Virus record (IMG/VR): IMGVR_UViG_3300020172_006270
Location: 159,269-223,268 of that record
Direction: 5' to 3' (one strand)
DNA length: 64,000 bases
Numbering within the stretch: the first letter of the stretch is position 1; every line of letters starts with the position of its first letter. Below, in pieces: positions 1 to 52,489 of the stretch. The translations under genes were made by a program, and so were the position numbers. Under the pieces are notes generated by a model that was not told the DNA's origin, made no database searches, and saw only the letters and a program-made list of their open reading frames with translations.

Positions 1-352
1 TAGTCATCGCATTGCGAGTTGTTTGAGTAGCACCTGTAGCACTGAGCTTGCCCCCACCAGCAACTTGTTGGATAATTGTAGTCAATAGAGTAGCGGTTTT
101 GTTCTTATTCAGATTGTGTCTATCTAGCACCTGGAAAAGACGGTGAACTTGACGTTGAATGTCGTTGGTGATGCCTTCCATTTCCGCTGCTGCTTCTGGC
201 GGTGGATCACGGTCTGTCCCCTGACCAGGATTTTGTCCCTCTGGACTTGGACCTGTAGGTGGCATTTGATTAGCAGCCGGGTTCATCTGGTTTTGAGCAG
301 GCGGCATCCCGTCTTCTTCTTTTAAGCAAACAAAATCATGAAAACTTTTCAT
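1..352 (-). CDS. Hypothetical protein with CTS-like N-terminus (partial, runs off window start)
   Basis: Not in ORF track; manual translation MKSFHDFVCLKEEDGMPPAQNQ..., ATG overlaps the TAA of the upstream ORF (TAATG), open to base 1. Confidence 0.8.
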   Translation of the reverse strand, partial: MKSFHDFVCLKEEDGMPPAQNQMNPAANQMPPTGPSPEGQNPGQGTDRDPPPEAAAEMEGITNDIQRQVHRLFQVLDRHNLNKNKTATLLTTIIQQVAGGGKLSATGATQTTRNAMT

Positions 353-12221: not shown

Positions 12222-12254
12222 GACAATAATAGAGTTCGACTGCGTAAATATTGT

Positions 12255-12791
12255 ATGCGTTTTCACAATTGGCTAGTTTTGCAGGAATCTAACCTACAAG
12301 ACCTCTATACAAGTACGGTTCAAGCCTTCCCCCGGACGACCAAAAGACAACATGCCACCGATTTAGTTCGGATCATCGAGTTGAATTGGACGCCCTTCTT
12401 GGGGGTCAAAACCCTATTCATAAAGGGTATTGCGCATAGCGAAGAAAGCGGAAAAGAATATTCCCCAATGGTATTGTTCAAAGGTGTGAATTATCACAAC
12501 GCCAAGGACAACCAGAATTGGATCGAGATTGTAGCGAATGATGGTCGTCACTACGTCTTTGAAAGACTCAGTAACGATAACGATGTGTTAGTTCGGTGTG
12601 ATTGTAATGATTTCAAATGGCGTTTCAACTACACAGATCACATAGATACATCGTTGTATGGGAGAGTCAGAAAGAAGTACGAAGCGAATGTGAATCCTGG
12701 CTCGGCGAATCCGCTCGAAATGCCGGGAATGTGCAAGCACTTAATCAAACTCGTGCAATCTCTCGATCACGCTGGAATCTTGGAGGATTAA
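12255..12791 (+). CDS. SWIM Zn-finger protein with CTS-like N-terminus (start revised to 12255)
   Basis: CDCNDF...MCKHL; MRFHNWLVLQE; TAAATA 4 nt before ATG. Confidence 0.75.
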   Translation: MRFHNWLVLQESNLQDLYTSTVQAFPRTTKRQHATDLVRIIELNWTPFLGVKTLFIKGIAHSEESGKEYSPMVLFKGVNYHNAKDNQNWIEIVANDGRHYVFERLSNDNDVLVRCDCNDFKWRFNYTDHIDTSLYGRVRKKYEANVNPGSANPLEMPGMCKHLIKLVQSLDHAGILED

Positions 12792-17041: not shown

Positions 17042-17539
17042 ATGGGTCAGAAGTTTATTTGGTCTGCGGAATGGAGAGACGATAAGACATGGCAGCTTAT
17101 CGCACCGCCTGCTCCTGTACAAATTGGCACACGTCCACATTTGACCATAGAAGAAATAGCCGTGCAGCATGGCAATAATACTGCGTGGATACCCGGCAAG
17201 GCATCCTGGAATGAAACAAAGATCACCTATAACGACGTAGAAAATGAAGAAGGTGGTGCGTTGTTTATGCGATGGGTGTCTGAGCAATATCGTGCCTTAG
17301 ACACAACAGAAAGCCGTGGCTGGCAATCAGAACGAGCGACAGTTATTTTGAGGCTACATGGTGGAAATGGTGAAGTTTTAGAAGTGTGGTACTTGGAAGA
17401 TTCTTTTATCACCGCTCTGGATTTTGGCTGTCCAGGCTACACTAGCTCCTTAGATTACGAGCTAAATGTTGCTGTTAGATATTCCGATGTCAGCTATTCG
17501 ACACCTGATCCTAAAACATGGCTGAAGCCACTTACTTGA
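17042..17539 (+). CDS. T4 gp19-like tail tube family protein (orphan paralog)
   Basis: RPxLTIEE, PGKASW, ITYxD, NGEVLEVWxL, LDFG, VRY pattern of gp19 family. Confidence 0.7.
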   Translation: MGQKFIWSAEWRDDKTWQLIAPPAPVQIGTRPHLTIEEIAVQHGNNTAWIPGKASWNETKITYNDVENEEGGALFMRWVSEQYRALDTTESRGWQSERATVILRLHGGNGEVLEVWYLEDSFITALDFGCPGYTSSLDYELNVAVRYSDVSYSTPDPKTWLKPLT

Positions 17540-17732
17540 CGGGAACTGCTGTTGCACCACCTGCTCCTTTGCAAGCTCCACCTGGGCCGGGACCACCACC
17601 CATGCCACACAATTTTAGATCGTGTGGTTTTGGAGTTGTATCTTTTGGGCCGGGCTTAAACAAAGAGTCTTGAGCCTTCCCTTTGCTGATCCAACCGCCT
17701 TCGTTCAATGATAGCCAATGTTTGAAATCCAT
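17532..17732 (-). CDS. Small protein with CTS-like N-terminus
   Basis: MDFKHWLSLNE; TACATA 4 nt before ATG. Confidence 0.7.
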   Translation of the reverse strand: MDFKHWLSLNEGGWISKGKAQDSLFKPGPKDTTPKPHDLKLCGMGGGPGPGGACKGAGGATAVPVK

Positions 17733-18762: not shown

Positions 18763-19494
18763 ATGAACTTTTCAGAATGGTTATCAACTAATGAAGCTCG
18801 CTGGCGAGGCCCCGTAGGTGGAGCCTTTGGCCGTGATTCTCGTCGTATGCAACAACAACAAAAGCCGGTGACACCTGTGGCAAAACCAGAAGAAGAATCG
18901 CCCAAGCCAGATTTAGGACATGCTCCCAACCCTGCTGAACGTACTCCACCGCCTCAAATGCGTATGGGCAATAGGTTCCAGAATATTGACCAGAGAGTTC
19001 AATATGGAAAGAGCATTGAAAAGCAAATATTTGATAGCTTGGTTCGATGTGGGATGAAGCTCCGTGAACCGTCCAGCCAAGAAGATATGTACGACAAGAT
19101 TGACGGCTGGTGGGAAACGCCGAGTGGTGAGAAGCCTATTCAGATCAAATATCGTGACACCGGAGATGATATTCTCTTCGAGGTAATGAAGGATTATCGA
19201 CGTGGCGTGCCAGGAAGAGACATGGTTGGTAAAGCTGAGTTTTATGCCGTGCTAACTCGTGCCGGAGGCAAAATCGTATTAGTGAGCGTTGCAGAAGCCA
19301 AAAAGCTCATAGAAGAGATGCGTACCAGAGCCGAAGATGAAGGGTTTGACCAGCGTGGCAACTTCCGCATGGGTGGTGCAATATTGCGAGTTCGACCTGA
19401 TCCACGATCACAACAAGATAAACTCATGGCGTATATTCCGGTTTCAATGCTCAAGCAAATCACGCCGCCATGTTCTGCCCAAGTAAAATTCTAA
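18763..19494 (+). CDS. Putative PD-(D/E)XK nuclease with CTS-like N-terminus
   Basis: E...DMYDKIDGW...IQIKYR; MNFSEWLSTNE; TAAATA 4 nt before ATG. Confidence 0.6.
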   Translation: MNFSEWLSTNEARWRGPVGGAFGRDSRRMQQQQKPVTPVAKPEEESPKPDLGHAPNPAERTPPPQMRMGNRFQNIDQRVQYGKSIEKQIFDSLVRCGMKLREPSSQEDMYDKIDGWWETPSGEKPIQIKYRDTGDDILFEVMKDYRRGVPGRDMVGKAEFYAVLTRAGGKIVLVSVAEAKKLIEEMRTRAEDEGFDQRGNFRMGGAILRVRPDPRSQQDKLMAYIPVSMLKQITPPCSAQVKF

Positions 19495-23568: not shown

Positions 23569-23811
23569 TCATTTCTTCTGCACCAACTTGGTGAACTCGC
23601 TGTCGGAAAGGTAGGTTTTCGGGTTGCGAAGAATCTTTTCCATCAGTTCTTTCCCCCGTGGGCTGTTGAGATGCTCCCAGATGAAACGTCGGGTGGATAT
23701 ATCGTACTGATCGAGTGCGGTTTTCAGAGCAGATACGAGGGTCGATATAGCCTGGACTTTATTGTTGCCCCGGTCTTTGCCTTCGTTGATGTATTCCTTG
23801 AATGATTCCAT
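23569..23811 (-). CDS. Small protein with CTS-like N-terminus
   Basis: MESFKEYINE; TAGATA 4 nt before ATG. Confidence 0.75.
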   Translation of the reverse strand: MESFKEYINEGKDRGNNKVQAISTLVSALKTALDQYDISTRRFIWEHLNSPRGKELMEKILRNPKTYLSDSEFTKLVQKK

Positions 23812-24705: not shown

Positions 24706-25164
24706 ATGGCACCACAAGAAAATGAACAGAATCCAATGTCTCTTGAAAACCTACCTGCTTACTTGAAGTCTCTTAAAGAGAAAGGAAGCACAGGTGATTG
24801 TCTTGTTGATATGGGAAGGATTGAGGAACCAAAGAAAATGCCTAATAAATGGTTATGGACTCAGCGAATCTTGTTTACGCTTGCTATCTGCATGATCGCT
24901 GGCACAACCGGGTTAATTACTTATGATTTAGCGTCACGACAAGAGCTTACTGTCGTGGTGAATCTCAACAAAGACGCCAACCCAGCCCAGGCAATTCCAG
25001 AAATGGTTTCTGACAGTGGCGGCACTGTTATAGCAGTCAAACAACATGACAGCACTTCAGCTTATGAAGTCAAGGTGTCTACCCGCAAGAGCCGGAAAGC
25101 GCTTTTGGAATGGCTCAACAAGAACAAGAACGTCAAAGAAGTGAAGCTAAAAGAAGACAAATGA
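24706..25164 (+). CDS. Single-pass membrane protein
   Basis: SD AAGGAG; central TM helix. Confidence 0.7.
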   Translation: MAPQENEQNPMSLENLPAYLKSLKEKGSTGDCLVDMGRIEEPKKMPNKWLWTQRILFTLAICMIAGTTGLITYDLASRQELTVVVNLNKDANPAQAIPEMVSDSGGTVIAVKQHDSTSAYEVKVSTRKSRKALLEWLNKNKNVKEVKLKEDK

Positions 25165-25577
25165 TAATTGAATTCAAACAATGGTTGGAGAATAGCTTTC
25201 CAGAAGCAGCCTGGGGTCCATCTTCTTTAGTTGGAAGCAATGGAACTTCGCTCAGAGTCAATGGTGGATACATCGACATTCAACCTGTTACTAAATGGTC
25301 GCCCAGAAGCCAATCTGTAATCGACTTTTACGTTGATGAAGCCAAAAGGAATCAAGGAATTGGAGATTGGCTAGTCAAACAAGCTAAATTGAAATTCAAA
25401 GATTTGGGAGCGCAAGTATCATCAATTCCTTCGATGAAAGTTTTCTTCAATAATGGATTTAGAAATCCAAATATGGCAAATCAATCATTTGAAGATCATG
25501 TGAAAGAATTTCAAAACAATGGCTCATCACTCTTCCTAGCCATGAATGACGACCAAGGAAAGCCTTACTTTAATTGA
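25161..25577 (+). CDS. GNAT acetyltransferase with CTS-like N-terminus
   Basis: FYVDEAKRNQGIG (AcCoA motif A), FFNNGF; MIIEFKQWLE. Confidence 0.75.
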   Translation: MIIEFKQWLENSFPEAAWGPSSLVGSNGTSLRVNGGYIDIQPVTKWSPRSQSVIDFYVDEAKRNQGIGDWLVKQAKLKFKDLGAQVSSIPSMKVFFNNGFRNPNMANQSFEDHVKEFQNNGSSLFLAMNDDQGKPYFN

Positions 25578-26027: not shown

Positions 26028-27464
26028 TTAGATGACGAAGTTAGCGATGCTCATACGAGCATAGAACTTGGCACCTTCACGCAGCAATTTCTTGCCGTAG
26101 CGTGTCAGAATACCCTTGCGTGGGCAGAAGGATTCTGGGTCGAGGACCACAGGTGTCTGTGTCAGTGGAACGTATGGGCAGTAGAAGTAACCACTGTCCA
26201 TGTAGCTGTCGCCCTTGTAACCCATCAAAATCTGGTTGGATGGGAAGAGAGGGTCTTTGTACAGTCTCCAACGGTTGTTAACAGTACCAACATACTGGAT
26301 GCCCAGGCTGCTAGTGAATGTTTCGCTTGGGGCTGGAGCAAAACCTGCGGTTGCTGTCTCGAAGATCGAGGCAACTTCAGGGCTGGTTACGAGCCAGTTA
26401 GCTCCACCACGAAGCGTCTTACGGTGGATGACGTTAGAAACTTCAACAACCTTGACATACAACGACTCATACTTTTCCTTGATGGTTTCACCAAGAGCAG
26501 TATTGAAGTCCCAAGCGGTTACTGTACCGCTGTTGTTGCGAAGGTCGGTTAGAACTTCACGGTCGATTTCGAGGTTGATTTCCTGGGCCAATACAGCGGT
26601 CAGTTCGGCTTCTGCGTCCAGGTTGTGCTGGCTGCGGAGGTCTTGCTGTGCTTCATAGGACCATACAGCCTTCAACTTACGGGTCTTGGCGGCAATTTCT
26701 TCCGACTCGATCACGAGGTTGATTTCTGGGAGGTCTTGCTGGCACTCCATGTTGTACTCATAGCTGATGACAGCGTGGTTAGCGCCAGGAGCCGAGTTCC
26801 ATGTGAGGGCGAGTTCGCCAGTGTTGTTGTTCAAGCTACCTGCTGTAACCTTAACGCTAGGAGCGCCAATGTCAGTGAAGGTGAAGCTACCACCGGACGA
26901 AACGATGAATGTCTGGACAGCAGTGCTGCCATCATAAATCGTACCAGTTACAGTACCGGCCAAAACTGGTGTGTGTTCCAAAGGAGTGAACACAGCAGCG
27001 GTGTCAGTACCAGCGTCAGTCGAGGTCGTCTCGTTCTGAATGAACTGGTGGGTGTAGAAGATGTCCAGGTTGGCAGTACCGTCAGCGGTCTGCATCAACG
27101 AGTTGGCGTCATCACCAGGGAAACCACCGTTGTTAGAAGCGCCACGGGTTGCACCCTTGTTGCTGCTATAACGGAAGCGTAGGTAATACACCAGACCTGT
27201 TGGGCCTAGCAATGGCTGAACGCTAACAATCTTGTTGGCGATCAACTGTGGGTAAATACGACGGACAAGCGGAATCGAGATTCGCTTGAACTGAGCGATG
27301 TCGCCAGTGTCGGTTGAGACTTCATTCATGAGTCTCTGGTTTTCGAGTAGAACTGCTGTGGCAGAGCGAACGTAACGGTCCTGAATACCTTCGAGGAGTC
27401 CGGTCTTGCCCCAACGAGATTCTAGCTCCTTAGCCTCATTCAAAAATCGAGAATTTGCGTTCAT
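26028..27464 (-). CDS. gp23: Major capsid protein, T4 gp23-like
   Basis: LLENQ, PLVRR, VQPLxGPTGLV, AKTRKLKAVW, QDLRSQH.LDAEAEL, EINLEIDRE, YCPYVPL, TRYG. Confidence 0.97.
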   Translation of the reverse strand: MNANSRFLNEAKELESRWGKTGLLEGIQDRYVRSATAVLLENQRLMNEVSTDTGDIAQFKRISIPLVRRIYPQLIANKIVSVQPLLGPTGLVYYLRFRYSSNKGATRGASNNGGFPGDDANSLMQTADGTANLDIFYTHQFIQNETTSTDAGTDTAAVFTPLEHTPVLAGTVTGTIYDGSTAVQTFIVSSGGSFTFTDIGAPSVKVTAGSLNNNTGELALTWNSAPGANHAVISYEYNMECQQDLPEINLVIESEEIAAKTRKLKAVWSYEAQQDLRSQHNLDAEAELTAVLAQEINLEIDREVLTDLRNNSGTVTAWDFNTALGETIKEKYESLYVKVVEVSNVIHRKTLRGGANWLVTSPEVASIFETATAGFAPAPSETFTSSLGIQYVGTVNNRWRLYKDPLFPSNQILMGYKGDSYMDSGYFYCPYVPLTQTPVVLDPESFCPRKGILTRYGKKLLREGAKFYARMSIANFVI

Positions 27465-27508: not shown

Positions 27509-28405
27509 TTATTGAGCTTGTTTCAAACCCGACAGGATCAACAGTTGATCCACGTCATTGTTTGTGGGTGCAGCGTATTCCGAAATCACTACACCATCAT
27601 CGGATGTCTTACCTCTCCCCGTTACATTCGTTGCATTCGTTGTTCTTTCTTTCTGCTCGTTGACAACCTCGGTCTTCTTCACAGACTTGATGGCCTTACG
27701 GCTCTCTGTGATAAGTTCCTGAGACTGACGCACGGCTTCGTTCAACTTGGTGTTTTCTGTGGAGAGACGGATGTTGCGTGCTTCCATAATGCGAAGCTGG
27801 CCCTTCATCTCTTCTACACTCTTGTTGACTTCTTCCAGCTTGCTGGAAGAAACTGATGCGAAATCATCGTCCGACAAGTAGTTGCTGGTCAGATCAATGA
27901 TCTTGTCCAGAGTAACCTTGTGTTCGGCCATACGAGGATCGTTTAATACGTCCCGCTTGGCTTGTTCATAGATTTCCTGGCCCTTGAATTGCAAGAACTG
28001 GTCAACCTTATCGACAATGTATTCCTTCATCTCAGCCAGTTTCTTGTCGTACTCTTCGTACATCTCGACTTCTAGCTGCTGATTCTTGTCTCGCTCGCCC
28101 TTGAGCATCTGGTATGCTTCTTCATACCCTTCCTCAAGTGCTGCCTTGTACTCTTCACCCTGAAGCTCAAGACGGTTACGAAGATCGCCAATAATAGCGT
28201 ATGCTTCTTCGTAGCCTTTCTCTGCTGTCTTTTCAGCGTTCGCCAACTCGCTAGTAAGCTCGGCGTAGGCTTCTTCAAGTTTCTGATTGTACTCAGTTTC
28301 GAGATTTACCTTAGCCTGCTCTAGCATGTCCTTGACGGCGGCTGCGACTTCGTTAATCTCAGATTCAGGTAGGAGCTTCTTCAGTGCTTCTGTAATCTTA
28401 TCCAT
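27509..28405 (-). CDS. Prohead scaffold/core protein, gp22-like
   Basis: Acidic coiled coil between protease and MCP. Confidence 0.75.
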   Translation of the reverse strand: MDKITEALKKLLPESEINEVAAAVKDMLEQAKVNLETEYNQKLEEAYAELTSELANAEKTAEKGYEEAYAIIGDLRNRLELQGEEYKAALEEGYEEAYQMLKGERDKNQQLEVEMYEEYDKKLAEMKEYIVDKVDQFLQFKGQEIYEQAKRDVLNDPRMAEHKVTLDKIIDLTSNYLSDDDFASVSSSKLEEVNKSVEEMKGQLRIMEARNIRLSTENTKLNEAVRQSQELITESRKAIKSVKKTEVVNEQKERTTNATNVTGRGKTSDDGVVISEYAAPTNNDVDQLLILSGLKQAQ

Positions 28406-29088
28406 TAGCCTAACCTCGCTTTGATATTGCTAGTTTGTTGTTCAATGATCCCGCCCAAGCAAGCAATAAGTGCTTCTTTATTTACATTATGTATGCGGCT
28501 ACATTCATTTTTCGCCACATTTTTGTGAATTTCAGAACTTGGTGCTGGTGTGTAACTTTCTTTCTTGCCAACGACCTTCTCCTGAAAGGCGTTGTAGGTG
28601 CTAGGATCAGCAACAGCATCGAAAGTAATTAGCTTGTAGCTTTCGCCAATAACTAAAATTCCATTCTCATCACTGCGACCGTTGCCAACGCCTCGGCTGC
28701 TGATTCCAACTCTCACCCCGTCAGACAAAAGACTTCGTAGTATTCTGCCGTGCGGTGTATTAAGAATCTCTCCTTCACCCATGAGGTTGTTTCCCTCCCA
28801 CCACAATTTAGTGATGACGTGAGAACATTTCTCAAAGTGAATGATCGAATCTGTAGGGTGATCTAACTCTCCCACCAGCCCACGGGCTTCTACGATGGGA
28901 ATCAATTTCTTGACGTTCTCATCGAGAACACCATAGGGGTAAATTCTTTTGTTTTTGTTAACTGCCTCGGCCTCTTGGAACTTGCCCTTGAACTTAGTCA
29001 GCCCCTTATCGGTAGCTGACTCGTTCAAATTCAAGACAAACCCGCCATTGTCACAGCAGTCAACGAATAGACTTAATCTTTCATCCAT
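28405..29088 (-). CDS. gp21: Prohead protease, T4 gp21-like
   Basis: NKNKRIYP, GELDHP, SHVI, TPHG, GISSRGVG, FDAVADPS. Confidence 0.95.
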   Translation of the reverse strand: MDERLSLFVDCCDNGGFVLNLNESATDKGLTKFKGKFQEAEAVNKNKRIYPYGVLDENVKKLIPIVEARGLVGELDHPTDSIIHFEKCSHVITKLWWEGNNLMGEGEILNTPHGRILRSLLSDGVRVGISSRGVGNGRSDENGILVIGESYKLITFDAVADPSTYNAFQEKVVGKKESYTPAPSSEIHKNVAKNECSRIHNVNKEALIACLGGIIEQQTSNIKARLG

Positions 29089-31185: not shown

Positions 31186-31587
31186 ATGAAAACATTTCAA
31201 GACTATGTGAGCTTAAAAGAGTTAGCAGCATACGATGTTGGCACTAATGTACTTGGCAATTCCAGCCTGGATGCCAATTCGGAAAAGGCTCTGACTGCCG
31301 CTATGCAGGCGTTCGAGGTCATAATGTCCAAGAACAGCCAAGCTGCCGCACAGTTCCTCAACCGTATGTCCGAAGTAATGCCCGAAATTAAAGCAATACT
31401 TCAGCAACATGGATTAGATAGTTTCAAAGACGGTAATTTCAAAACAGATATGCGAAAAGGAGCTTCAAAAGGCCGCAGGGTAATTTCAAAAGGTCTGGCC
31501 GATGTGTCTCCCGAAGATGTAAAAAATCATGGGACCGATGTATTGGCTACAAATTCCGCAGATTCTTTCCACAACCCAATTGGTTAA
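31186..31587 (+). CDS. Hypothetical protein with strong CTS-like N-terminus
   Basis: MKTFQDYVSLKE; alternative ATG at 31156. Confidence 0.7.
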   Translation: MKTFQDYVSLKELAAYDVGTNVLGNSSLDANSEKALTAAMQAFEVIMSKNSQAAAQFLNRMSEVMPEIKAILQQHGLDSFKDGNFKTDMRKGASKGRRVISKGLADVSPEDVKNHGTDVLATNSADSFHNPIG

Positions 31588-32587: not shown

Positions 32588-32835
32588 CGCTTGGCGTACC
32601 AAAATTGATGAGCTTTCTTGAGGATGTCCTCGGAAAGCTCAAAGCCGCACATATCGCCAACAACTGAATCCACGCCGCATAGCGGACAGATCACAGTTTT
32701 GTCATTGTCGGTATAGTCTTTAATTTCCGTCACGTTGAAAATCTTCAAACAGTGAAAACAACCGGCGTTAGTGGATTGCTCCACTAACTGCCGGTTTTTC
32801 ATTGCTAACGTGGGGAATTGTGTGATTCCTGTCAT
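32584..32835 (-). CDS. Small Zn-ribbon protein
   Basis: GCFHCLKIF...TVICPLCGVDSV. Confidence 0.8.
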   Translation of the reverse strand: MTGITQFPTLAMKNRQLVEQSTNAGCFHCLKIFNVTEIKDYTDNDKTVICPLCGVDSVVGDMCGFELSEDILKKAHQFWYAKR

Positions 32836-35378
32836 TAACCCTCGTCGCCTACGCTATAGTCGATGTCTTCTCGGTCCTGCTCGGCTTCGTAGTCTTGAAT
32901 CTCAAGATCATACTTCTTGATGTCCTCTCCATCTGGCTCTGGAATATTCGCACCTTCAGGTGCCTTCGAGCCTGGATCAGCATCGGGCGTTTCATCTGCC
33001 CCAGAAGCCGTCGCCGTTGGTGGAGGAGGAGCGCCTGCCCCACCGCCTGCTGCCGCCATTGGATCACCGCCTGCCATCGGATCAGGCGACATGCCCGGTC
33101 CACCCGGTTCGGTTCCAAGTTCTCCCTGACCACCGCCTGCATCAGCCCCAGGAATGCCCACGCCCAATAGCTGTGGATTTTGTGCCAATACTTGCAGTTT
33201 GAGGTCTTCCAGCTTTTGCAACTTCAGACGTGCCAACATTTCGTCAGCTTCGTCTTCAGAAAACTTCAATATCTTTGTGACAATATCATAGTCAGCCATA
33301 AGCTGACCACTCTTTAACGTGCCAGCATTAGTATAGCGGGCCGTAACCACTTCCGCACGGGACAGTTCCCGCCAATCCGAAGGAGCCGTCATCTTGATCT
33401 TCAAGTCTTGATAGCTTTCTTCAGGATACCCTCTTAAATGCAAGTGGTGTTCTGCCATTTCCAGGATTCCATCCTCGAAGTGACTTTGCAGCCGCTCAAT
33501 CATGCGAGCGAATTTAACGTCTTGAGCAGACAAAGTAATTCTTGTCGCTCCTGGGTCTTCATTATTGAAATAGTTCTTCGGGAAATTCAAGCTGGTCAAC
33601 AACTTGTTTCTGAAGTAAACGGCGTCATCAATTTCACCCAGGTTTTCTGCACCCGGCAAAGTATCAATACGAGTGTTGCTATTTGGTCGAATTGGTAGCC
33701 AATAGTCCTCGTCCTGAGCAGGTGGTTGCCAGCGTTCTTCTACAGAATTCGCCCCAGGTGTTCCACGACCACTTGTAACCTTACGCTTGCGGAATTGATC
33801 CTTTAGTCGATCAATAAATGCTTCAGCCTTGAATGGAGGAAGCTGTCCAACGTCAATATAGAATACACGACGTTCTGGCGCACGGGTGAGTCGATAGACC
33901 ACCATTGCGTCTTCCATCAATCTCAAGCTGTGTGCCGGTCCACGGGCCGGTTCGATCAAGCTCTGGCCATACGGATAGAATGTCTTGCGATCATCGCCGA
34001 TTCGGAAGTGAACGATCTGACTCGGAGCGAACCGAATGGCTGTCGTCTGATTCAATTCCATTTCATTCTGGCCGGTGACTGGTCCCCGCACGATGGCCTG
34101 ATAATCGGGGCCTTCTTTACTTTGTTGGTACTCGATCATCTTGCCCTTCACCGTCTCAATGCGATACATCGTTTCGGGAGGCAATGGCATAGCCCGATAA
34201 ATGCCCTCTTTGGGATTGTCCGGGTTGATTACCATTTCAACGAACCAGTCTCCAGCAATGCACAGGTTCTTAAACCATGTCCAACCCTGTCGGTTCATAT
34301 TGAGCATCTTGCGATGCAACAACAGGAATTCTACTTCTTCACGGATTTCATCGTTGGCCGTAAGCACCTTGAAGATATTGCCATCTTCATCTTTTTGACA
34401 ATTGTGCAGGATCACAGAATCCGTGGCGAAGCATTTGTGTCCTTCAACTGAGATGTCGTAAACATCTTGCTCTGGTCCTTCCTCAACGCCTATGACTCTA
34501 CGGCGATCTTCATGCTTGTACAGAGTTCTAATCTCTGCTGGCGTGAAACCTTCTTTCTTGACCCAGCCATCTATTGATGACCAATCAAAATCCAGTTTTT
34601 TGGCAATTTGACGGGTGGTTAGTCCACCACCAATCATGCGAATCACCCTATTCACTTTTTCATATGCAGGGTTGCTTTTGCCAGTTTTCCAGTCGTCAAC
34701 AAATTGACGTTCGCTGATCCAGCCCTTCGTGAAGGTGAATAGGCGAGGAAATTGTTTATGTTTGAGTTCAGATGCCGCTGACAACCGATAGAATGGCATC
34801 AATTCGTCACCGAACCGAAGTTCTCCAGTTTCTACCCATGTTCCATCTTTCTTCAGAACACGATGATCTGAAGTAGCGGTGAACTTTGTCCCATTGTCCA
34901 TGACAATAGTTGTAGTTTTAGCTCGTTTGACGAGTCGTGGGGCGAAAGCCCAACCCAGGTTGTAGTCTTTTTTCTGGGCGTCATAACAGTAAACCAAAAA
35001 TCGTTCTTCGGCTCTCTTCTCTGCTAACTCTTTTATGGTAGTGAACCCGAACGGCGTAGCGATCTTAGTGTCACCGGCAACGCAGGCTTCGTCAGCAAAG
35101 ACCGTCATTGCCATTTCGATTTCCGGGACATTACGCAGACGCTCATACTCTTTATACCGCATGGAGCGGTTGGATAGAGTCGTCGTGTCGATCATGTCGT
35201 TGGTTTGACGGTAGCTTGTTTGGCCACCCGGTCCACCACCGCTTTGAAAATCCGTCCCTAGAGCTTCTGGTTGCGCAATACCAGCAGTCCCGAAGTTCTT
35301 AGGGTCTTTACGAGCCGACAGAGGGTCTTTCTCTGTGGCGTATGCGAACAATTTGAAAAAGTCTGACCAAAGTGGCAT
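32835..35378 (-). CDS. gp20: Portal protein, T4 gp20-like, intein-containing
   Basis: LRLMEDAMVVYRLTRAPERRVFYIDVG, EDYWLP, IDTLPG, LGEIDD. Confidence 0.95.
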   Translation of the reverse strand: MPLWSDFFKLFAYATEKDPLSARKDPKNFGTAGIAQPEALGTDFQSGGGPGGQTSYRQTNDMIDTTTLSNRSMRYKEYERLRNVPEIEMAMTVFADEACVAGDTKIATPFGFTTIKELAEKRAEERFLVYCYDAQKKDYNLGWAFAPRLVKRAKTTTIVMDNGTKFTATSDHRVLKKDGTWVETGELRFGDELMPFYRLSAASELKHKQFPRLFTFTKGWISERQFVDDWKTGKSNPAYEKVNRVIRMIGGGLTTRQIAKKLDFDWSSIDGWVKKEGFTPAEIRTLYKHEDRRRVIGVEEGPEQDVYDISVEGHKCFATDSVILHNCQKDEDGNIFKVLTANDEIREEVEFLLLHRKMLNMNRQGWTWFKNLCIAGDWFVEMVINPDNPKEGIYRAMPLPPETMYRIETVKGKMIEYQQSKEGPDYQAIVRGPVTGQNEMELNQTTAIRFAPSQIVHFRIGDDRKTFYPYGQSLIEPARGPAHSLRLMEDAMVVYRLTRAPERRVFYIDVGQLPPFKAEAFIDRLKDQFRKRKVTSGRGTPGANSVEERWQPPAQDEDYWLPIRPNSNTRIDTLPGAENLGEIDDAVYFRNKLLTSLNFPKNYFNNEDPGATRITLSAQDVKFARMIERLQSHFEDGILEMAEHHLHLRGYPEESYQDLKIKMTAPSDWRELSRAEVVTARYTNAGTLKSGQLMADYDIVTKILKFSEDEADEMLARLKLQKLEDLKLQVLAQNPQLLGVGIPGADAGGGQGELGTEPGGPGMSPDPMAGGDPMAAAGGGAGAPPPPTATASGADETPDADPGSKAPEGANIPEPDGEDIKKYDLEIQDYEAEQDREDIDYSVGDEG
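34401..35084 (-). mobile_element. Intein (228 aa) in portal protein
   Basis: Block A CVAGDTKI, block B ATSDHRVL, block F VYDISVEGHKCF, block G ILHN followed by Cys+1. Confidence 0.92.
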
Positions 35379-37044: not shown

Positions 37045-37121
37045 GTGCCTCCCTTGGCTTCAAATACTTCCGTGTACTCTATATATGGCACACGGTATTT
37101 ATTTGCGAAGGGCGTGACTCA

Positions 37122-37358
37122 ATGATTGGATTTACAAACTGGTTGAACAGACGAGACGAGAGTTTTGGTGGATCGGCTGGCGATCCATCAGGGGCCGGTT
37201 TGGATCAACCTGAGAATGGGGAAAGAGAAGTCGCTATTGAACCTAACTCTTCGCTTGATGGAAGTGATCGACCGCCTACTGCTAAAAACCGCAGCAAGAG
37301 AATTGTGGGTCGTGCTGGCGGTGTGATCTTCAGCAAGAAGAAATGTAACTGCAAATGA
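37122..37358 (+). CDS. Small protein with CTS-like N-terminus
   Basis: MIGFTNWLNRRDE; ends at terminator. Confidence 0.6.
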   Translation: MIGFTNWLNRRDESFGGSAGDPSGAGLDQPENGEREVAIEPNSSLDGSDRPPTAKNRSKRIVGRAGGVIFSKKKCNCK

Positions 37359-37387
37359 AAAAAGCCCGGCAAATTGCCGGGCTTTCT
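37358..37387. terminator. Bidirectional intrinsic terminator
   Basis: aaagcccggcaa/ttgccgggcttt. Confidence 0.85.
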
Positions 37388-37389
37388 CG

Positions 37390-38118
37390 TTACTTACTTG
37401 GTTGGAGTATGTAATCTTTTGGATAGACCCCTTGTGGGCCATTTCTATCTACAATTGGAATCTCCGGTACTATTGGTCGGTATTTTTGTGGCACAATGTC
37501 GTTGTCGGCATACACCACACAAATCCACCCATCCCAACGACGGTTAAATTCTTCCATAGTCCAAGTGCGAATCTTGAGCGAACTATCGCTGTTGTTGATG
37601 TACTTGACTATTCCCTTTTGTTCGTCGTAATGCACCAAGGTCATTGCGTGACCTGGGACTGCGAACAAACAACCACGTCTTTCTTGGACAACTGACTTGA
37701 TGATTAAACTACGATCAGACCTACTTGTTGTCTGTTCGTATCTCACCCGTAGTTGTTTTAGTTTAGTGGCGGCACTGCTTGGACTAGCATAGCTTTTGCA
37801 ATCTGCTAAGTCAGTCATGTTGATTAGTTTTGGTTCTTCAGCGTATCGTCCGCAAGTTTCAAGCGAACACCATACACACTGAATTCCCGTCTTGTTGAAG
37901 ACACGATCCTTCATTGGGATCGGCACCATTACATCGGTGAGGTCTTCGTCCGCTTCTCCTTCATACTCAGCTACAGGATTCTGTACTGGAATGCCAGGAT
38001 TTGGATTTGGATATTGATGATTGGTAGTTTGTCCACGCAAAGTGTGTTTTGGAAGCGTGATTGCAACGCTGCTCAAAGCCACAACTGCGCAGGCTAAAAC
38101 CGCAAGCAACTTCTTCAT
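37390..38118 (-). CDS. Secreted papain-fold (C39-like) cysteine peptidase
   Basis: Signal peptide; QCVWCS, GHAMTLV, YINNS; SD AGGAGG. Confidence 0.65.
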   Translation of the reverse strand: MKKLLAVLACAVVALSSVAITLPKHTLRGQTTNHQYPNPNPGIPVQNPVAEYEGEADEDLTDVMVPIPMKDRVFNKTGIQCVWCSLETCGRYAEEPKLINMTDLADCKSYASPSSAATKLKQLRVRYEQTTSRSDRSLIIKSVVQERRGCLFAVPGHAMTLVHYDEQKGIVKYINNSDSSLKIRTWTMEEFNRRWDGWICVVYADNDIVPQKYRPIVPEIPIVDRNGPQGVYPKDYILQPSK

Positions 38119-45647: not shown

Positions 45648-46775
45648 TTAATCCTTGTGAAAATGTACATCTTTGTGTCCGTGATCGTGCGTGTATTCCA
45701 TCTCCCGGAATCCACCATAATTGAACGATGGCTTGGTATCTGAATTGACGACTTTCCACGTCAATTCAAATCCATACTTTGCTACCTTCTCAATGCCAGA
45801 GAAATTGATTTTATCTGCTGTATCTCTCGGCGTGTGATAATTGTCGTGCATTCCAGTGTGCAAGAACGCAATTGGAACCTTCTTATTGTAGAAGCAAGCG
45901 TGATCGCTGCCACCACTGCTACGGCCTGTAATGCTCTTAGCAAATGAGTATTTTCCACTCAATTCCCCAATGATGCTCGACACGTCAGGAGAGCTTTCCC
46001 CTTCGTTGAAGGCAACGGCAGTGCGAGCTTTGCCCAAATATCCAACCATATCCATATTGAGCATGAATATATGCTTGCGAATATTGGGGTCGCCTTTCGG
46101 GAAAATAGGGTTGTCGCAATAATATCGTGACCCAATTAACCCCATTTCCTCGGCACTAAAAGACATAAAGACCACGGTTCTTTTGTTCTGACCACGCAGA
46201 GACGCAAAGGTTTTGGCTATTTGAAGCAAAGCCACCGTCCCTGAAGCGTTATCGTCAGCCCCAGGGTGAATTTTCCCGCCACCCGACCGGCTCATGGCTG
46301 GTCCCCAGCCAATGTGGTCCATGTGTGCGCCAACAACTACGATCTCATCTTTTAATTCGGTGCCTTCAATCCAGGCAATGATATTCTGCGTGAAATCATC
46401 ACCAGTTTCATTGTTCGGCCCAGGATTCATTCTTTTGATATTGAACTTTTGATATGCCGTATCGAGGCCGAAACTTTCATATATCTTTTTCAGATAATCG
46501 GCAGCGACAACATTTCCTTTTTTGCCCGACATTCGACCTTCAAGCTCGGCAGAACACAAATATTCTAAATGTTTTTGCAATTCGCTTTCAGATATATCTG
46601 CGATGGCTTCATCATAAGTCTTTTTGCGTGGCGGGTCCACGTCAGGTGGCGGCAAAGGCTCGACCGGAGGAACGAATTCTTCTTGAACAATGGGCGGCGG
46701 GACATCACGTTTGCTGATATACACAGCAAGCAAAATGATTCCCAGCGACAGTACAACGAGAGGGAGCTTACGCAT
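45648..46775 (-). CDS. Membrane-anchored M28 peptidase (start revised to 46775)
   Basis: GAHMDH, GADDNASG, AEEMGLIGS, NMDM, SDH, YHTPRD. Confidence 0.92.
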   Translation of the reverse strand: MRKLPLVVLSLGIILLAVYISKRDVPPPIVQEEFVPPVEPLPPPDVDPPRKKTYDEAIADISESELQKHLEYLCSAELEGRMSGKKGNVVAADYLKKIYESFGLDTAYQKFNIKRMNPGPNNETGDDFTQNIIAWIEGTELKDEIVVVGAHMDHIGWGPAMSRSGGGKIHPGADDNASGTVALLQIAKTFASLRGQNKRTVVFMSFSAEEMGLIGSRYYCDNPIFPKGDPNIRKHIFMLNMDMVGYLGKARTAVAFNEGESSPDVSSIIGELSGKYSFAKSITGRSSGGSDHACFYNKKVPIAFLHTGMHDNYHTPRDTADKINFSGIEKVAKYGFELTWKVVNSDTKPSFNYGGFREMEYTHDHGHKDVHFHKD

Positions 46776-46869
46776 GGCAAACCCTGTTTTATTAGTGTGT
46801 TGGCTATATATTCTGTCCAAACAACCTACAAGGAAGCGAGGACTCCAACTTAATTAGAAAAGGAATATA

Positions 46870-48741
46870 ATGGATCAAGCCGTATTTTTCAAGAGCAAAC
46901 GTGACTCTGTTTGGCGGGGCAAACACAAAACCCTGGAAGAATTCTATAAGAGTGGTGGGAAGATACTTAAACGAGGGGAGGGCAAAAAGAGTCGTCTCCA
47001 ATATGATCCCGACTATTACACTCTCGACAAGTATGAACTTGAAATTGATCCCGATGAGCCGCTGGAAAACTTCGATACTTACGATTCGGCCCGTCGTCAA
47101 AAAGAGATCATCAAGTGCTGCAACAGCTTCGCTTATTTCTGCCACAAATATGTGAAGATTCTTCACCCGATGGATGGTTTGATTCCTTTCGTATTATACA
47201 ACTATCAGCGAAAGGTTATCCAAGAATACGAAAACCACCGATTTAACATCATCAGTAAGTTTCGTCAAGGGGGACTGACGACAGTAACTTTGCTGTGGGG
47301 CATGTGGCGCTGCATGTTCCAACTCGACCAACAGATCATGATCTTGGGTCGAACTGACCGTGACGCCACAGATATTGGCATGATGGTGGATCGTTCCATT
47401 GAGAACTTCCCAGATTGGTTGAAGCCAATAAAAGATGGTAAGTGGAATGACCACATGAAGATGTTCACGGACACCGGGTCGGCCTTAAAATTTCACTCTC
47501 CTGAAGCTGCTCGTGGTAAGTCCGTTACATTCTTGATTGTGGACGAAGCTGCGTTCATTGATGACATGGACAAGCACTGGAAAGCTATGTGGCCTATCCT
47601 TTCGACGGGTGGTGGTTGCACCCTTGTATCCACGGTTAATGGTCTGGGCAACTGGTATGAACAAACCTACCACGAAGCACAAGAAAAGCAAAACCGATTC
47701 AATATCATCGACTTGGATTATTGGGAACATCCCGACTACAACGACGATGAATGGGTTAAAGAACAAAAGGCACAACTCGGCGAGAAAGGCTTCTTGCAGG
47801 AAGTGTTGCGTGAGTTCCTTGGCTCCGGTGACACTTACTTCTCTGCTAAGGTCATCACACAACTCACAGAGCAAACCAGAAACAATTACCCTAGCCGCAA
47901 GTTATTCCCGAAATGGGTCAACAAGGCAGGCCGTATTGCTGTGTTGGAAAGTGAAGACCACAACAAGGGTGCTATGTGGGTCTGGAAAGAACCAATTGAT
48001 GGCCATGAATATATCATTGGCGCTGACGCCTCTGAAGGCCAAGGCAACAATAACGACAATTGCTGTTTTCAGGTAATTGATACAGCAACTTTGGAACAAG
48101 TGGCCGAGTTTTACTCCAATATCATTGTGCCTCACGAATTCGCTCAGGTGCTTAATGAAGTGGGCATTTATTACAACAATGCTCTGATTGTTGTCGAAAA
48201 CATGGGTCCAGGCGGGGCTGTTCTAAGCAACCTGCAATTCACCTTGTTTTACGAGAACCTTTATTACGAAAGCCTTAAATCGGCCAACGTAAAACCGGGC
48301 ATCAAAATTGGTCAAGTAAACCGATCTCTATATTTGGAATCTCTCCAAAATCGGCTATTGAACCAAACTGTGCGTATTAACAGTATGCGATTTGTTATGG
48401 AACTTCAGACTTTTGAGTACAACCCTGTCACTCGCAAGGCTGAAGCCCAAAAAGGCAAGCACGACGACGCTATTATGTCTATGTGTATGGCCCTTTATGT
48501 TCGTGATTCCATGTTGCGAGACATACCTATGGGGGCAGAGATTCCGAAAGAAGTAACGGCCACGCTAAAAGCTCAGGTATATGAAGAAATCAAACGTGAA
48601 TTGATGGAAGGAAGACCAGAAGATTTCCTTATGGATGATGAAATAGACCTTTTAGCGCCCGACAAAGATACTGTCATGCCCGGTGTTATTTTCAACATTG
48701 AGCGTCGGAACGATAGACTGCTTAAAGAATTTGGGTGGTAA
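46870..48741 (+). CDS. gp17: Terminase large subunit, T4 gp17-like
   Basis: LYNYQ, KFRQGGLTT, IVDEAAF, VSTVNG, GADASEG, VENMGPG, HDDAIM. Confidence 0.95.
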   Translation: MDQAVFFKSKRDSVWRGKHKTLEEFYKSGGKILKRGEGKKSRLQYDPDYYTLDKYELEIDPDEPLENFDTYDSARRQKEIIKCCNSFAYFCHKYVKILHPMDGLIPFVLYNYQRKVIQEYENHRFNIISKFRQGGLTTVTLLWGMWRCMFQLDQQIMILGRTDRDATDIGMMVDRSIENFPDWLKPIKDGKWNDHMKMFTDTGSALKFHSPEAARGKSVTFLIVDEAAFIDDMDKHWKAMWPILSTGGGCTLVSTVNGLGNWYEQTYHEAQEKQNRFNIIDLDYWEHPDYNDDEWVKEQKAQLGEKGFLQEVLREFLGSGDTYFSAKVITQLTEQTRNNYPSRKLFPKWVNKAGRIAVLESEDHNKGAMWVWKEPIDGHEYIIGADASEGQGNNNDNCCFQVIDTATLEQVAEFYSNIIVPHEFAQVLNEVGIYYNNALIVVENMGPGGAVLSNLQFTLFYENLYYESLKSANVKPGIKIGQVNRSLYLESLQNRLLNQTVRINSMRFVMELQTFEYNPVTRKAEAQKGKHDDAIMSMCMALYVRDSMLRDIPMGAEIPKEVTATLKAQVYEEIKRELMEGRPEDFLMDDEIDLLAPDKDTVMPGVIFNIERRNDRLLKEFGW

Positions 48742-48745: not shown

Positions 48746-49708
48746 ATGTCGTTCATGAAATACCTTGAAAATAAAGCTCGACCAAGCATCCTTGTCGTCA
48801 TGGACGAATACAAGGAAAAGCTGCACGCTGATATGGCGAGCCTTATGCTCAAACCAGACAAACAACTTATCGAAGCTCGTAAAAACATCGTCAACATCAA
48901 AGAGGTCGCCAGAACACTATCAGAACTGGCGTATCCGTTATCTGACGAGTTCAAGATGGCAATACGCACAGGTGATCCTAAAAGAGTAAATCACGCCCAC
49001 ATGACCTTCCGTCGCTGGGTGGATTATCACAACGCAGATCGTGCCTTGTCTGACAAGATTGAGACAGCAATGTTTCAATATCAGACCAAGTTGTATGGAA
49101 AAGAATTTGGTCCAGAAGAAGCTGATGCGGTTGCCAAATCTTCTTTATCTGAATCAACGGCTATTCTCGACCAGATGGCCCACAATATAAATTTGGCAAT
49201 ATCCAAAATCCCTACATGGCATAATCATAAAATTGTCATAGAGGCCATTTGCCCAGAAGTGGGATGGGTGGTTTCAGAAGCCAAAATCACCGTAGGCGAA
49301 GCGTTCCATGCAGTTTTCTTGTACGAACACACGTCAACGGGATTTAAGGCGAAATTGCTCACAGAAGAGGACATGCCTGCAAGTCTTAAAGTTGACATGC
49401 AAGATTTGCTGGCAAAGCTAAGAACCAACCCTAAATACAACAAGATATTGACTTTGTATATGACAAGGCCAATATCCGAACGTCGATATTTTGAAATTGC
49501 AAAAAGAGATTTGTCACTTGGAATTGAAGCGGTTTTGCCGAGCCACATCACCTTGGCGACAAGTCCTTTGCCTGGAGATTCCGATGTATGGAAAGTCCGG
49601 GTTGAAGAAAAATATCTCAAAGAATATCTCCATGAGGGAGATGTAAAAGAATATCAAGTCATCGGGGAAGAAGCCCCAATGCGCTGGATTGAAAGGATGA
49701 GTAAATGA
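48746..49708 (+). CDS. Hypothetical protein with CTS-like N-terminus (start revised to 48746)
   Basis: MSFMKYLENK just after terminase stop. Confidence 0.7.
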   Translation: MSFMKYLENKARPSILVVMDEYKEKLHADMASLMLKPDKQLIEARKNIVNIKEVARTLSELAYPLSDEFKMAIRTGDPKRVNHAHMTFRRWVDYHNADRALSDKIETAMFQYQTKLYGKEFGPEEADAVAKSSLSESTAILDQMAHNINLAISKIPTWHNHKIVIEAICPEVGWVVSEAKITVGEAFHAVFLYEHTSTGFKAKLLTEEDMPASLKVDMQDLLAKLRTNPKYNKILTLYMTRPISERRYFEIAKRDLSLGIEAVLPSHITLATSPLPGDSDVWKVRVEEKYLKEYLHEGDVKEYQVIGEEAPMRWIERMSK

Positions 49709-50043
49709 AAACAAACACAAACGAGACAAAAGCGGCTTTGCAGAAAGCATTAGCGCAAGTACCGCAAGACCATGCTTTGTCAGAAGTACGTTATCACATA
49801 CGGGCCGCTCTAGGAAAGCTGGAGACTGTTGAGAAGAAACGGGATCGTCGTGAGGTTAACTCGGAACGTCGTGAATTGGCACGGGGCCAAGGCAATGCGT
49901 ATTCGTATGATCCATTCCGGGCAATTCAGGCTATTGACGAAGAAATCGCCAAAGAAAAAGCCAAGATTGAAAATATTCAACGCCGCCGTACACAAGATGA
50001 CGAGAAAGATGACGGCGATGAGCTTCAAACAGTTCTTGGTTAA
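49705..50043 (+). CDS. Small coiled-coil protein
   Basis: Overlaps upstream stop by 4 nt; charged helical composition. Confidence 0.7.
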   Translation: MKTNTNETKAALQKALAQVPQDHALSEVRYHIRAALGKLETVEKKRDRREVNSERRELARGQGNAYSYDPFRAIQAIDEEIAKEKAKIENIQRRRTQDDEKDDGDELQTVLG

Positions 50044-50575
50044 TGAAGGACGTAGAAACAAATACGACTACTCTTCATTATTGGTCGAACCGCCAGAAGA
50101 AATTGCAGACAATGTAATTTCTTGGGGGTGGGATCATGTACCTAATGAATCCGTGTTTCTTGATCCTAAAGACCCCAGCTTTGGTCGAGAAGATGACCCT
50201 CACATTACTTTAATCTATGGCATTCACACAGACATCTTAAAAGAAGTGTCTGATCTGTTTGTTGACGAGAAAGAGTTTGAGTGTAAGTTGGGCAAGATTG
50301 ATATGTTTACGAAAAGCGATAAATTCGATGTGCTAATCGTAAGCGTGGAATGCGAAGAGTTACACAGGCTAAATCGTAAGATGCGAAGAAATTTAGAAGC
50401 CACTGAAAGCTATCCTGTTTATGTGCCTCACGTTACAATTTGCTACCTGAAAAAAGGTCAAGGCAAACAATACATTGGCAATGACGTTTTTGTAGATGAA
50501 AAGTTTACGATCAACAAGATTTTCTTTTCTTCAAAGACTGGCGAAAAAACTCCAATAAAGTTAGGTGCAAAATGA
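50018..50575 (+). CDS. 2H phosphoesterase, Acb1/T4 gp57B-like (start revised to 50018)
   Basis: Two HxT motifs PHITLIYG and YVPHVTICY; MSFKQFLVNE. Confidence 0.8.
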   Translation: MSFKQFLVNEGRRNKYDYSSLLVEPPEEIADNVISWGWDHVPNESVFLDPKDPSFGREDDPHITLIYGIHTDILKEVSDLFVDEKEFECKLGKIDMFTKSDKFDVLIVSVECEELHRLNRKMRRNLEATESYPVYVPHVTICYLKKGQGKQYIGNDVFVDEKFTINKIFFSSKTGEKTPIKLGAK

Positions 50576-51589: not shown

Positions 51590-52489
51590 ATGTTCAAATT
51601 ATCTTCTATTCTTGTCTTGTTGGTTAGTTTCCTGGCCCCGATTGCCAGCGCCGAAACGCCCTCTGTGTATTCATATGATCCATTAGACAATATGCCGATT
51701 ATGGAGCGTCGGCCTACTGGCTTTGCAGGCATGGCTCCAATCGAGCAACGTGGTCCAGAGTTCCGTAAGTTTCTCGCTGCATCTGTCAAAATCAGCGTGG
51801 GCGGCGGTTCTGGTTCTGGAACCATTGTTTATTACGATGCAGCTAAAAATCTCGCTTACGTCGCATCTTGCGGGCATATGTGGAGTCAAGGAACCATGTC
51901 CGTAGAAGAAGGCAAGCGTCGAAATATGACTTGCAAAGTAATCACTTGGTATCATAACGAAAAGAAGCTGGACTCTCCCAAGAGTTACAATGCCAATGTA
52001 ATATTCTATAGCTATATCAGCGGTCAGGATACGTCACTTGTGACTTTTACTCCAGATTGGCAACCTGAGTATTTCCCCATTGCTCCTGTGAACTACGAGT
52101 ACAAGGCTGGTCGCCATGCTCACTCATTGGGATGTGATGGCGGCAATGAGGTCGCACACTATGACATTGAAATAATTGGACTTGGTGGCGGTGATTTGGT
52201 TACGAATCAAAACAGCCCACGCCCAGGACGTTCTGGTGGTGGGCTGATGGATGACGACGGATATTACATCGCAACTTGCTGGGGAACTCAATATCGTGAT
52301 GGAAGCGGCAAGGGATATTTTACGCCTCTATCTGCCATTCATGGATATTGGAACAAGCAAAGTGGATATGAGTTCTTGTTGAACCAGAAGCCGGGCGGCA
52401 CAGCAGCACGCCAGATTCCGGTCAAAGACCGCAGTGGTCCTCAAGGCACATATAAGCCAGAATATATTTTGCTTCCAGGTGGACGTTAA
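51590..52489 (+). CDS. Secreted trypsin-like (S1) serine protease
   Basis: Signal peptide ending ASA; GSGT, SCGH, DTSL, PGRSGGGL. Confidence 0.85.
   Translation: MFKLSSILVLLVSFLAPIASAETPSVYSYDPLDNMPIMERRPTGFAGMAPIEQRGPEFRKFLAASVKISVGGGSGSGTIVYYDAAKNLAYVASCGHMWSQGTMSVEEGKRRNMTCKVITWYHNEKKLDSPKSYNANVIFYSYISGQDTSLVTFTPDWQPEYFPIAPVNYEYKAGRHAHSLGCDGGNEVAHYDIEIIGLGGGDLVTNQNSPRPGRSGGGLMDDDGYYIATCWGTQYRDGSGKGYFTPLSAIHGYWNKQSGYEFLLNQKPGGTAARQIPVKDRSGPQGTYKPEYILLPGGR

Follow-up and report, generated by a model that had tools for sequence, protein, structure and literature searches.

Viral 2H phosphodiesterases are already known as immune-evasion enzymes, many of them from huge phages, and a virion ejection protein that blocks CBASS, an antiphage signaling system based on cyclic oligonucleotides, has also been described. 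Internal protein IPI of phage T4 is itself an anti-defense cargo. Also on record are the 2H domains predicted in injected polyvalent proteins (PMC5512222) and the capsid-targeting sequences of T4 (PMC9026906). We found no paper in the literature that joins 2H immune-evasion enzymes, polyvalent 2H domains, T4 capsid targeting and the CBASS-blocking ejection protein, and the terms 'capsid targeting sequence' and 'Acb1' occurred together only in a preprint on a protease trigger (PMC12991175). Here we analyze a 64,000-nucleotide stretch (the window), the last 64 kb of the 223,268-bp IMG/VR record IMGVR_UViG_3300020172_006270 (rated 46% complete), in which a gene encodes a free-standing phosphodiesterase related to Acb1 that starts with a putative T4-type targeting propeptide. 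This combination is new, as is the apparent spread of the same tag to some 20 or more putative cargo genes of a huge phage.

The enzymes closest to the one encoded in the window (hereafter the target) are Acb1 (T4 gp57B; Erwinia phage FBB1, 7T26/7T27) and PDE-9 (Burkholderia phage BCSR5, 9Q2G/9Q2Y), whose chains are its best profile matches among solved structures. Like the target, both have a 2H fold with an HxT/HxT tetrad, an R-E pair shortly before the first histidine, a second motif of the form Y-x-P-H-x-T-[LI]-x-Y and, as far as alignment (W74) and residue count (F107) place them, aromatic residues at the W74 and F107 positions. Unlike LigT/ThpR proteins (E. coli LigT, 5LDM; T. thermophilus, 1IUH; P. 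horikoshii, 1VDX), the target misses the cut-off of TIGR02258; its profile similarity to them is weaker than to Acb1-type chains, and it has no ligase neighbor. The closest homolog in a cultured phage is the 2H protein PDE-11 (Maribacter phage Colly_1 gp180, YP_010357429.1; 32% identity, E 9e-19) which, unlike the target, has 161 amino acids (aa), is untagged and lies among small early-type genes. Doherty et al. 2025 (bioRxiv 10.1101/2025.08.21.671373) included PDE-11 in an 18-nucleotide cleavage panel. The 2H domains that Iyer et al. (2017; PMC5512222) described in polyvalent proteins belong to the same sequence clade as the target but, in contrast to them, the target is free-standing and would enter the virion by means of a T4-type propeptide rather than through fusion to a large injected protein.

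The likeness to T4 extends to the tag and the head. The tags of the record resemble those of T4 IPI, IPII and IPIII in comprising about 10 N-terminal residues, with two aromatics three residues apart followed by an aliphatic residue and an x-E end. A gp21-family protease is encoded by both phages, as are a scaffold (likely so here) and a head module in T4 order, and the T4 internal proteins and the tagged proteins of the record are alike diverse, fast-evolving and mostly orphan open reading frames (ORFans). The tagged repertoire is much larger than in T4: 223 kb, from a genome that is about half complete, contain at least 21 genes for putative cargo. The tag also has a consensus of its own (F-[KR]-x-[FW]-L...[LIV]-N-E) and the putative cargo includes a recognizable enzyme.

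A 2H phosphodiesterase related to Acb1

The gene and the elements of its product discussed below are as follows.

50018..50575, + strand: 2H phosphodiesterase gene of an Acb1-related phage clade, 185 aa (open reading frame, Pfam, PHROG 755, AlphaFold2 model)
50018..50047, + strand: tag MSFKQFLVNE, with the pattern aromatic-x-x-aromatic-aliphatic and a V-N-E end; putatively a propeptide for capsid targeting, with cleavage following E10
50201..50209, + strand: first catalytic motif H62-I-T64, after the invariant G-R57-E; aligns with T4 Acb1 H44-S-T46
50429..50437, + strand: second catalytic motif H138-V-T140, inside YPVYVPHVTICY; aligns with the Acb1 motif YxPHITLSY

The reading frame extends from the ATG at 50018 to a TGA at 50573-50575 and encodes a protein with 47 close homologs; an exhaustive search at E<=1e-3 returned 4,695 cluster representatives. 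It is a real, conserved gene. Alternative in-frame ATGs are present at 50009 (MTAMSF...) and 49997. MSFKQF is the exact start in most orthologs, one 95%-identical homolog is called from the MTAM start, and the tag pattern is retained with either start codon.

A reading of this DNA from sequence alone had proposed an Acb1-like phosphodiesterase with two HxT motifs, quoting the string ATESYPVYVPHVTICY, which corresponds to residues 128-143. The two motifs are indeed present, and R57, H62, T64, H138 and T140 are invariant in an alignment of 66 sequences. The target scores 38.8 bits with the Pfam family 2_5_RNA_ligase2 and 34.9 bits with Acb1 (PF23474), both above the cut-off of 27, and is assigned to PHROG 755 ('RNA ligase'). 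The NCBIfam model for ThpR (TIGR02258) gave 38.6 bits, so far under its equivalog cut-off of 65.7 that identity as a ThpR equivalog is ruled out. Searched against the chains in the PDB, the family profile matched best 9q2g (PDE-9, deposited as 'Anti-CBASS protein Acb1'; E 4.9e-8), then FBB1 Acb1 (7t26; E 3.4e-4) and two LigT-like chains (about 6e-4); it did not find E. coli LigT or T. thermophilus 1iuh, and a single-sequence search of the PDB returned marginal matches only. Pairwise alignment in hhalign with T4 Acb1, as read from the T4 genome, gave E 4.6e-5, with both HxT motifs and their contexts (RE...H and YxPHxT[LI]xY) aligned, R57-E58 on R40-E41 and F97 on W74. By residue count rather than alignment, Y132 and H138 are six residues apart, the same distance as between F107 and H113 of Acb1. 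In the structure of Acb1 with cyclic GMP-AMP (cGAMP), W74 and F107 are base-stacking residues; the aromatics so described are Y12, W74, F107 and W147, and E141 is named beside them (PMC9117128). Residues Y16/Y18 of the target may stand in for Y12.

The AlphaFold2 model, built with 66 homologs, has a mean predicted local distance difference test score (pLDDT) of 91, and low confidence or disorder is confined to residues 1-13. Every match in the fold search was a 2H protein, and the model has the bilobed 2H fold. Comparison with Acb1 and LigT, which the sequence-only reading had named as one way to check its proposal, gave a divided answer: the sequence profile is nearest the Acb1 group, whereas in global fold comparison the nearest structural neighbors are LigT/ThpR. 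The Acb1 core (residues 1-137) aligns to residues 17-174 of the model. Beyond it remain residues 175-185, predicted as a strand (pLDDT 83-93); Acb1 has a short flexible C-terminal lid (145-152), and the target is some 30 aa longer than the compact Acb1 (about 150 aa). We read the target as a probably active 2H phosphodiesterase from a phage clade of its own that is sister to Acb1 in sequence but has a core that is larger than that of Acb1 and LigT-sized. The earlier proposal of a 2H enzyme related to Acb1 is supported (Pfam, profile and hhalign); 'Acb1-like' is fair as a label, but 'an Acb1' goes beyond the evidence.

A T4-like tag on unrelated proteins

A 10-residue tag suffices for packaging in T4, with positions 4 and 7 serving in targeting and positions 8 and 10 in processing, and gp21 cleavage follows L/I-x-E (PMC9026906). 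In the T4 genome we read the starts of IPII and IPIII as MKTYQEFIAE and that of IPI as MKTFKEF... The target had been described as carrying a capsid-targeting-like tag, and the comparison across the record upholds this description. Its aromatics F3 and F6 match the T4-type targeting positions (4 and 7 in T4), and about 21 genes in the 223-kb record begin with the same pattern, M-x(0-4)-[FYW]-x-x-[FYW]-[LIVM], at T4-like spacing and mostly with [LIVM]-x-E a few residues further on. Ten of the 21 are in the window, interleaved with the head module. Examples are MNFREWLLNE, MRFKQFLLNE, MDFKHWLSLNE, MESFKEYINE and MKTFQDYVSLKE; these sister tags often end in L-N-E, I-N-E, L-K-E or L-Q-E. The pattern heads 13 of 311 N-termini called from the first ATG, against 0.45 expected from its internal frequency of 0.14% (about 29-fold; binomial P = 2e-15). 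A strict version matched 18 of 2,531 candidate Met positions in six frames, and all 18 were at plausible gene starts.

The 21 carriers have no detectable mutual similarity after residue 16, and we therefore reject paralogy as the source of the shared tag. Most are ORFans, and none belongs to a Pfam family except the target and one protein with a weak GNAT signal. We also reject the tag as a part of the 2H fold: it is disordered in the model, and where the domain is embedded in larger proteins the match starts only at about residue 14. Among homologs of the target the tag is present in 48 of 109 free-standing proteins, once as MKTYREFVED, and in none of 86 multi-domain proteins; other free-standing homologs begin directly at the domain. 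Where the tag is present, its E lies 1-5 residues ahead of the first conserved residues of the fold. The homolog with the most T4-like tag (P0129) comes from a contig of just 1 kb.

T4 Acb1 (gp57B; NC_000866 13953-14411 (-)) itself starts MMEFKDF, which resembles the MKTFKEF start of the neighboring IPI gene (13592-13879 (-)), and hhalign places MSFKQF of the target on MMEFKDF. In the 595-kb huge phage LR756511, a 1,076-aa protein (34616-37846 (+)) starts MEFREWFRSAE; by this resemblance, large proteins in other huge phages carry a candidate tag as well.

Apart from the target and the gene that follows the terminase (described below), the tagged genes of the window are these, with a slash after the last residue of the tag.

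1..352, - strand: tagged ORFan MKSFHDFVCLKE/E, N-terminal part; truncated by the left edge of the window (genome 159219-159620)
12255..12791, + strand: tagged ORFan MRFHNWLVLQE/S
17532..17732, - strand: tagged ORFan MDFKHWLSLNE/G
18763..19494, + strand: tagged ORFan MNFSEWLSTNE/A
23569..23811, - strand: tagged ORFan MESFKEYINE/G, with the same spacing as T4 YQEFIAE
25161..25577, + strand: tagged protein MIIEFKQWLE..., weakly matching GNAT acetyltransferases (E 3e-4, below cut-off)
31186..31587, + strand: tagged ORFan MKTFQDYVSLKE/L, beside the head module
37122..37358, + strand: tagged ORFan MIGFTNWLNRRDE/S

The GNAT-like protein is a possible second enzymatic cargo.

Relatives embedded in polyvalent proteins

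Iyer et al. (2017) proposed that polyvalent proteins are delivered with the DNA and that their 2H domains act as RNases or degrade defense nucleotides; RNA ligases were never seen in association with this 2H group (PMC5512222). Residues ~14-184 of the target recur as a single domain, at 37-49% identity, in giant proteins of 1,000 to 5,614 aa. The giant homologs that we scanned carry an N-terminal phage lysozyme or SLT domain, ddrB-ParB, Kinase-PolyVal and Strawberry-notch (Sbno) helicase domains. The same clade is therefore embedded beside hallmark domains of polyvalent proteins. The informative architectures are listed below.

P0071: lysozyme, 2H, ddrB-ParB and Kinase-PolyVal
P0083: SLT, 2H and Sbno helicase
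P0062: 2H and ddrB-ParB
P0068: Tad3 fused to 2H
P0075: prohead protease, 2H and a long coiled coil
P0078 and P0103: a weak nucleoside 2-deoxyribosyltransferase-like region before 2H (about 24 bits, under the model cut-off of 30)

Tad3 is a Thoeris inhibitor that binds ThsB, and its fusion to 2H in P0068 points to a link of the domain to signaling defenses. The protease part of P0075 is 36% identical to the prohead protease of the window (E 3e-25), and this fusion places the 2H domain inside the prohead.

Terminase operon and head module

The target had been placed in the terminase operon, and its position agrees: it belongs to a tight string of same-strand genes headed by the large terminase subunit (TerL).

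46870..48741, + strand: TerL, T4 type, heading the string (Pfam Terminase_6N/6C, PHROG 2)
48746..49708, + strand: 320-aa lineage-specific protein, tagged (MSFMKYLENK); its N-terminus is conserved in 31 homologs and the gene is syntenic in relatives
49705..50043, + strand: 112-aa charged protein overlapping the target start (open reading frame, no family match); syntenic in relative L015
50572..51087, + strand: 171-aa Gp80-like fiber protein, its start overlapping the target stop (Pfam PF23140, 35 bits)

The order TerL, ~320-aa tagged protein, ~113-aa protein and 2H enzyme is kept in relative L015 at 64% identity. At 41% identity, relative L016 has an M28 peptidase and TerL followed by two genes and the 2H gene, with a T4-type portal gene a few genes downstream. 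Because the order TerL-x-x-2H is conserved in relatives, the target gene is a stable member of the packaging and head cluster. The 320-aa tagged neighbor had no Pfam or PHROG match and its Atlas leads all scored below 0.6; its AlphaFold2 model has a pLDDT of 82, yet found no fold match in the PDB. PADLOC returned no match, and in a scan of the operon for sigma-70 promoters and terminators the sites were no commoner than in shuffles.

Other genes flank this string. An M28-family metallopeptidase gene (45648-46820 (-), 138 bits) is divergent from the adjoining TerL gene, and its position beside TerL is kept in L016, where it is next to a ferritin-like gene. The portal gene of L016 (7914-10469 (+)) contains an intein (Pfam Intein_splicing). 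A 299-aa protein encoded at 51590-52489 (+) has a signal-peptide-like N-terminus and a weak match to trypsin-like peptidases, and is downstream of the 2H gene in L015 too.

The head module of the window is in T4 order (portal, S77 protease, scaffold-like protein and major head protein).

26028..27464, - strand: major head protein, N-terminus MNANSRFLNE/A (PHROG 138, E 1e-84)
27509..28405, - strand: acidic coiled-coil protein with 12 L/I-x-E sites, between the protease and the major head protein
28405..29088, - strand: prohead serine protease of the T4 gp21 family (Peptidase_S77), the proposed cutter of the tag (PF03420, 91.7 bits; PHROG 207, E 3.6e-48)
32835..35378, - strand: portal protein (PHROG 213, E 1.6e-74)

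The protease gene is flanked by a 675-aa open reading frame and the scaffold-like protein, with the portal gene further on. The position and composition of the acidic coiled-coil protein make it the likely scaffold core. The major head protein has a tag-like end 10 residues in, which suggests a very short propeptide compared with that of T4 gp23.

Two upstream elements recur in the record. The first, which recalls the late promoter of T4, is a TATAAATA-like element ([CGA]TA-N-ATA[AT][AGT]) with only 1-3 nt between it and the ATG. It has 16 sites in the 223-kb record, and 10 of the 12 copies that precede an open reading frame of at least 45 aa are at tagged genes (Fisher P 1e-9). The copies in the window are at 12244-12257 (+), 18752-18765 (+) and 23809-23822 (-). 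This distribution suggests a co-regulated cargo regulon, in which the element may serve as a translational signal or else as a late promoter whose mRNAs would be nearly leaderless. The second, CTTAATTAGA, has three copies, each 13-22 nt before a start codon: at 46849-46858 (+) for TerL, at 35391-35400 (-) for the portal and at 13412-13421 (+) for a small gene starting at about 13434. We read it as a second shared upstream element, putatively of packaging genes.

The closest phages in the databases are uncultured huge phages of 484-642 kb, and contigs with relatives of the neighboring gene reach 428 kb. The data sets listed with the locus are all DNA metagenomes (freshwater, sediment and aquaculture), with no RNA run among them, and 50,697 phage records searched by megablast with the operon gave no match; a phage with this operon is known solely from metagenomes. 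Although IMG/VR labels the record 'provirus', the window consists of phage genes throughout. Given this gene content and the length of the relatives' contigs, a fragment of a free huge phage seems more likely than a provirus.

Proposed mechanism and alternatives

The tag, the late or structural operon and the link to the capsid interior are each supported by independent comparative evidence, and we propose the following sequence of events. The target would be transcribed with the large terminase among structural (late) genes, and its first ~10 residues, common to about 20 other unrelated proteins, would act as a T4-type capsid-targeting propeptide and bring the enzyme into the prohead's scaffold core during assembly. 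The gp21-family protease would then remove the propeptide at V-N-E/G, giving a mature start a few residues before the folded domain, and the trimmed enzyme would ride in the capsid and enter the next host with the DNA. There it could hydrolyze cyclic oligonucleotides of the CBASS type before phage gene expression; the cyclic oligoadenylates (cOA) of type III CRISPR systems or 2'-5'-linked signals are further possible substrates. Late timing, packaging, cleavage site, injection and substrate are steps that we infer, and to the whole chain we give slightly less than an even chance.

Several observations weigh against this proposal. At the predicted cleavage site the P3 residue is Val (V-N-E) rather than Leu or Ile, and the target has no TATAAATA-like element of its own, unlike many other tagged genes. 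The 2H ortholog in the huge phage LR756511 has no clear tag. Co-folding of the protease with the target scored 0.00, a result that is evidence neither for nor against their interaction. On the enzymatic side, Y12, W147 and the C-terminal lid of Acb1 could not be mapped on the target, nor could E141 be placed, and the 15 N-terminal residues of PDE-9 are an active-site lid, so an enzymatic role of the N-terminus is possible. We know of no report of T4 Acb1 as a virion cargo. The Acb1 homolog of phage G was not found in particle proteomics. Finally, an enzyme locked in the prohead is unable to act on the cytoplasmic signals of the current infection.

The sequence-only reading had suggested an activity pre-loaded for the next infection, and a serious rival to this is that the target is a late anti-signaling phosphodiesterase that works in the cytoplasm during the current infection, its packaging being incidental or absent. 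The prohead protease gp21 of T4 switches on the CD-NTases of CBASS from ~14 min after infection (PMC12991175, 2026 preprint) and T4 Acb1 is active in infected-cell lysates (PMC9117128); the phage of the window has a gp21-family protease, and the target is in the terminase operon among structural genes. Since activation of the CBASS cyclases sets in with prohead assembly, co-expression with the head genes would time a phosphodiesterase well even if it is unpackaged. We nevertheless consider this explanation unlikely, because it accounts neither for the same tag on ~21 unrelated proteins nor for the alternation of tagged and untagged versions of the domain, the fusion to a prohead protease and the embedding in polyvalent proteins. 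It is also compatible with packaging, as unpackaged copies could act late.

Alternatively, the target could work like LigT/ThpR or Usb1, healing RNA ends or acting as an RNase, rather than as a degrader of signals. When ribonuclease defenses of the host cut tRNA or mRNA, such an enzyme could open the 2',3'-cyclic phosphates at the breaks, perhaps for resealing by a phage RNA ligase, or it could trim host RNAs. The LigT-like ranking by fold is consistent with this role, as is the RNA ligase encoded elsewhere in the record (PF09414, 90 bits; G000:C1:35002-35478 (+), outside the window). This ligase is, however, the only one in the record and lies 174 kb from the 2H gene without synteny, whereas the neighbors of the target, in relatives too, are terminase and structural genes; RtcB was not found in the record. 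The TIGR02258 score (38.6 against 65.7), the profile matches to Acb1-type chains but not to E. coli LigT or T. thermophilus 1iuh, the lack of RNA ligase association reported by Iyer et al. (PMC5512222) and the signaling defenses to which the Tad3 fusion points all argue against an RNA repair role, which we regard as improbable. That the N-terminal segment is an enzyme-specific lid like that of PDE-9 and resembles a capsid tag by coincidence is very improbable: PDE-9 is the best profile match among solved chains, its functional ~15-residue lid is poorly predicted by AlphaFold, residues 1-13 of the target likewise have low confidence, and hhalign pairs the starts of the target and T4 Acb1, but a lid cannot explain why the same motif heads ~20 non-2H proteins, is missing from embedded copies and many solo homologs, and ends in a protease motif (x-x-E) 1-5 residues ahead of the domain boundary.

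Returning to the proposal of a packaged and injected enzyme, we extend it tentatively to the lineage as a whole. A lineage of huge (>400 kb) freshwater phages with T4-like heads may have expanded capsid targeting into a general cargo-loading code, in which the tag, often with a TATAAATA-like element abutting the start codon, would send dozens of unrelated proteins, including an Acb1-related phosphodiesterase, into the prohead, so that a signal-degrading activity would be delivered pre-made and be at work in the host ahead of all phage gene expression. We think this extension rather likelier to be wrong than right.

Significance

The known destroyers of CBASS, Pycsar or CRISPR signaling nucleotides are thought to act once expressed in the infected cell. 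If the target is packaged and injected as proposed, it would match, as a free-standing protein, the 2H domains whose delivery inside injected polyvalent proteins has long been predicted. The tag and protease site would then provide a simple sequence rule to predict the injected proteome of uncultured huge phages, and the tag would be of practical use where foreign proteins are to be loaded into capsids other than those of T4. The candidate cargo proteins are mostly ORFans and are therefore candidate new anti-defense proteins. In the case of packaging, phages could arrive in the host pre-armed against signaling defenses by means of a portable 10-residue tag.

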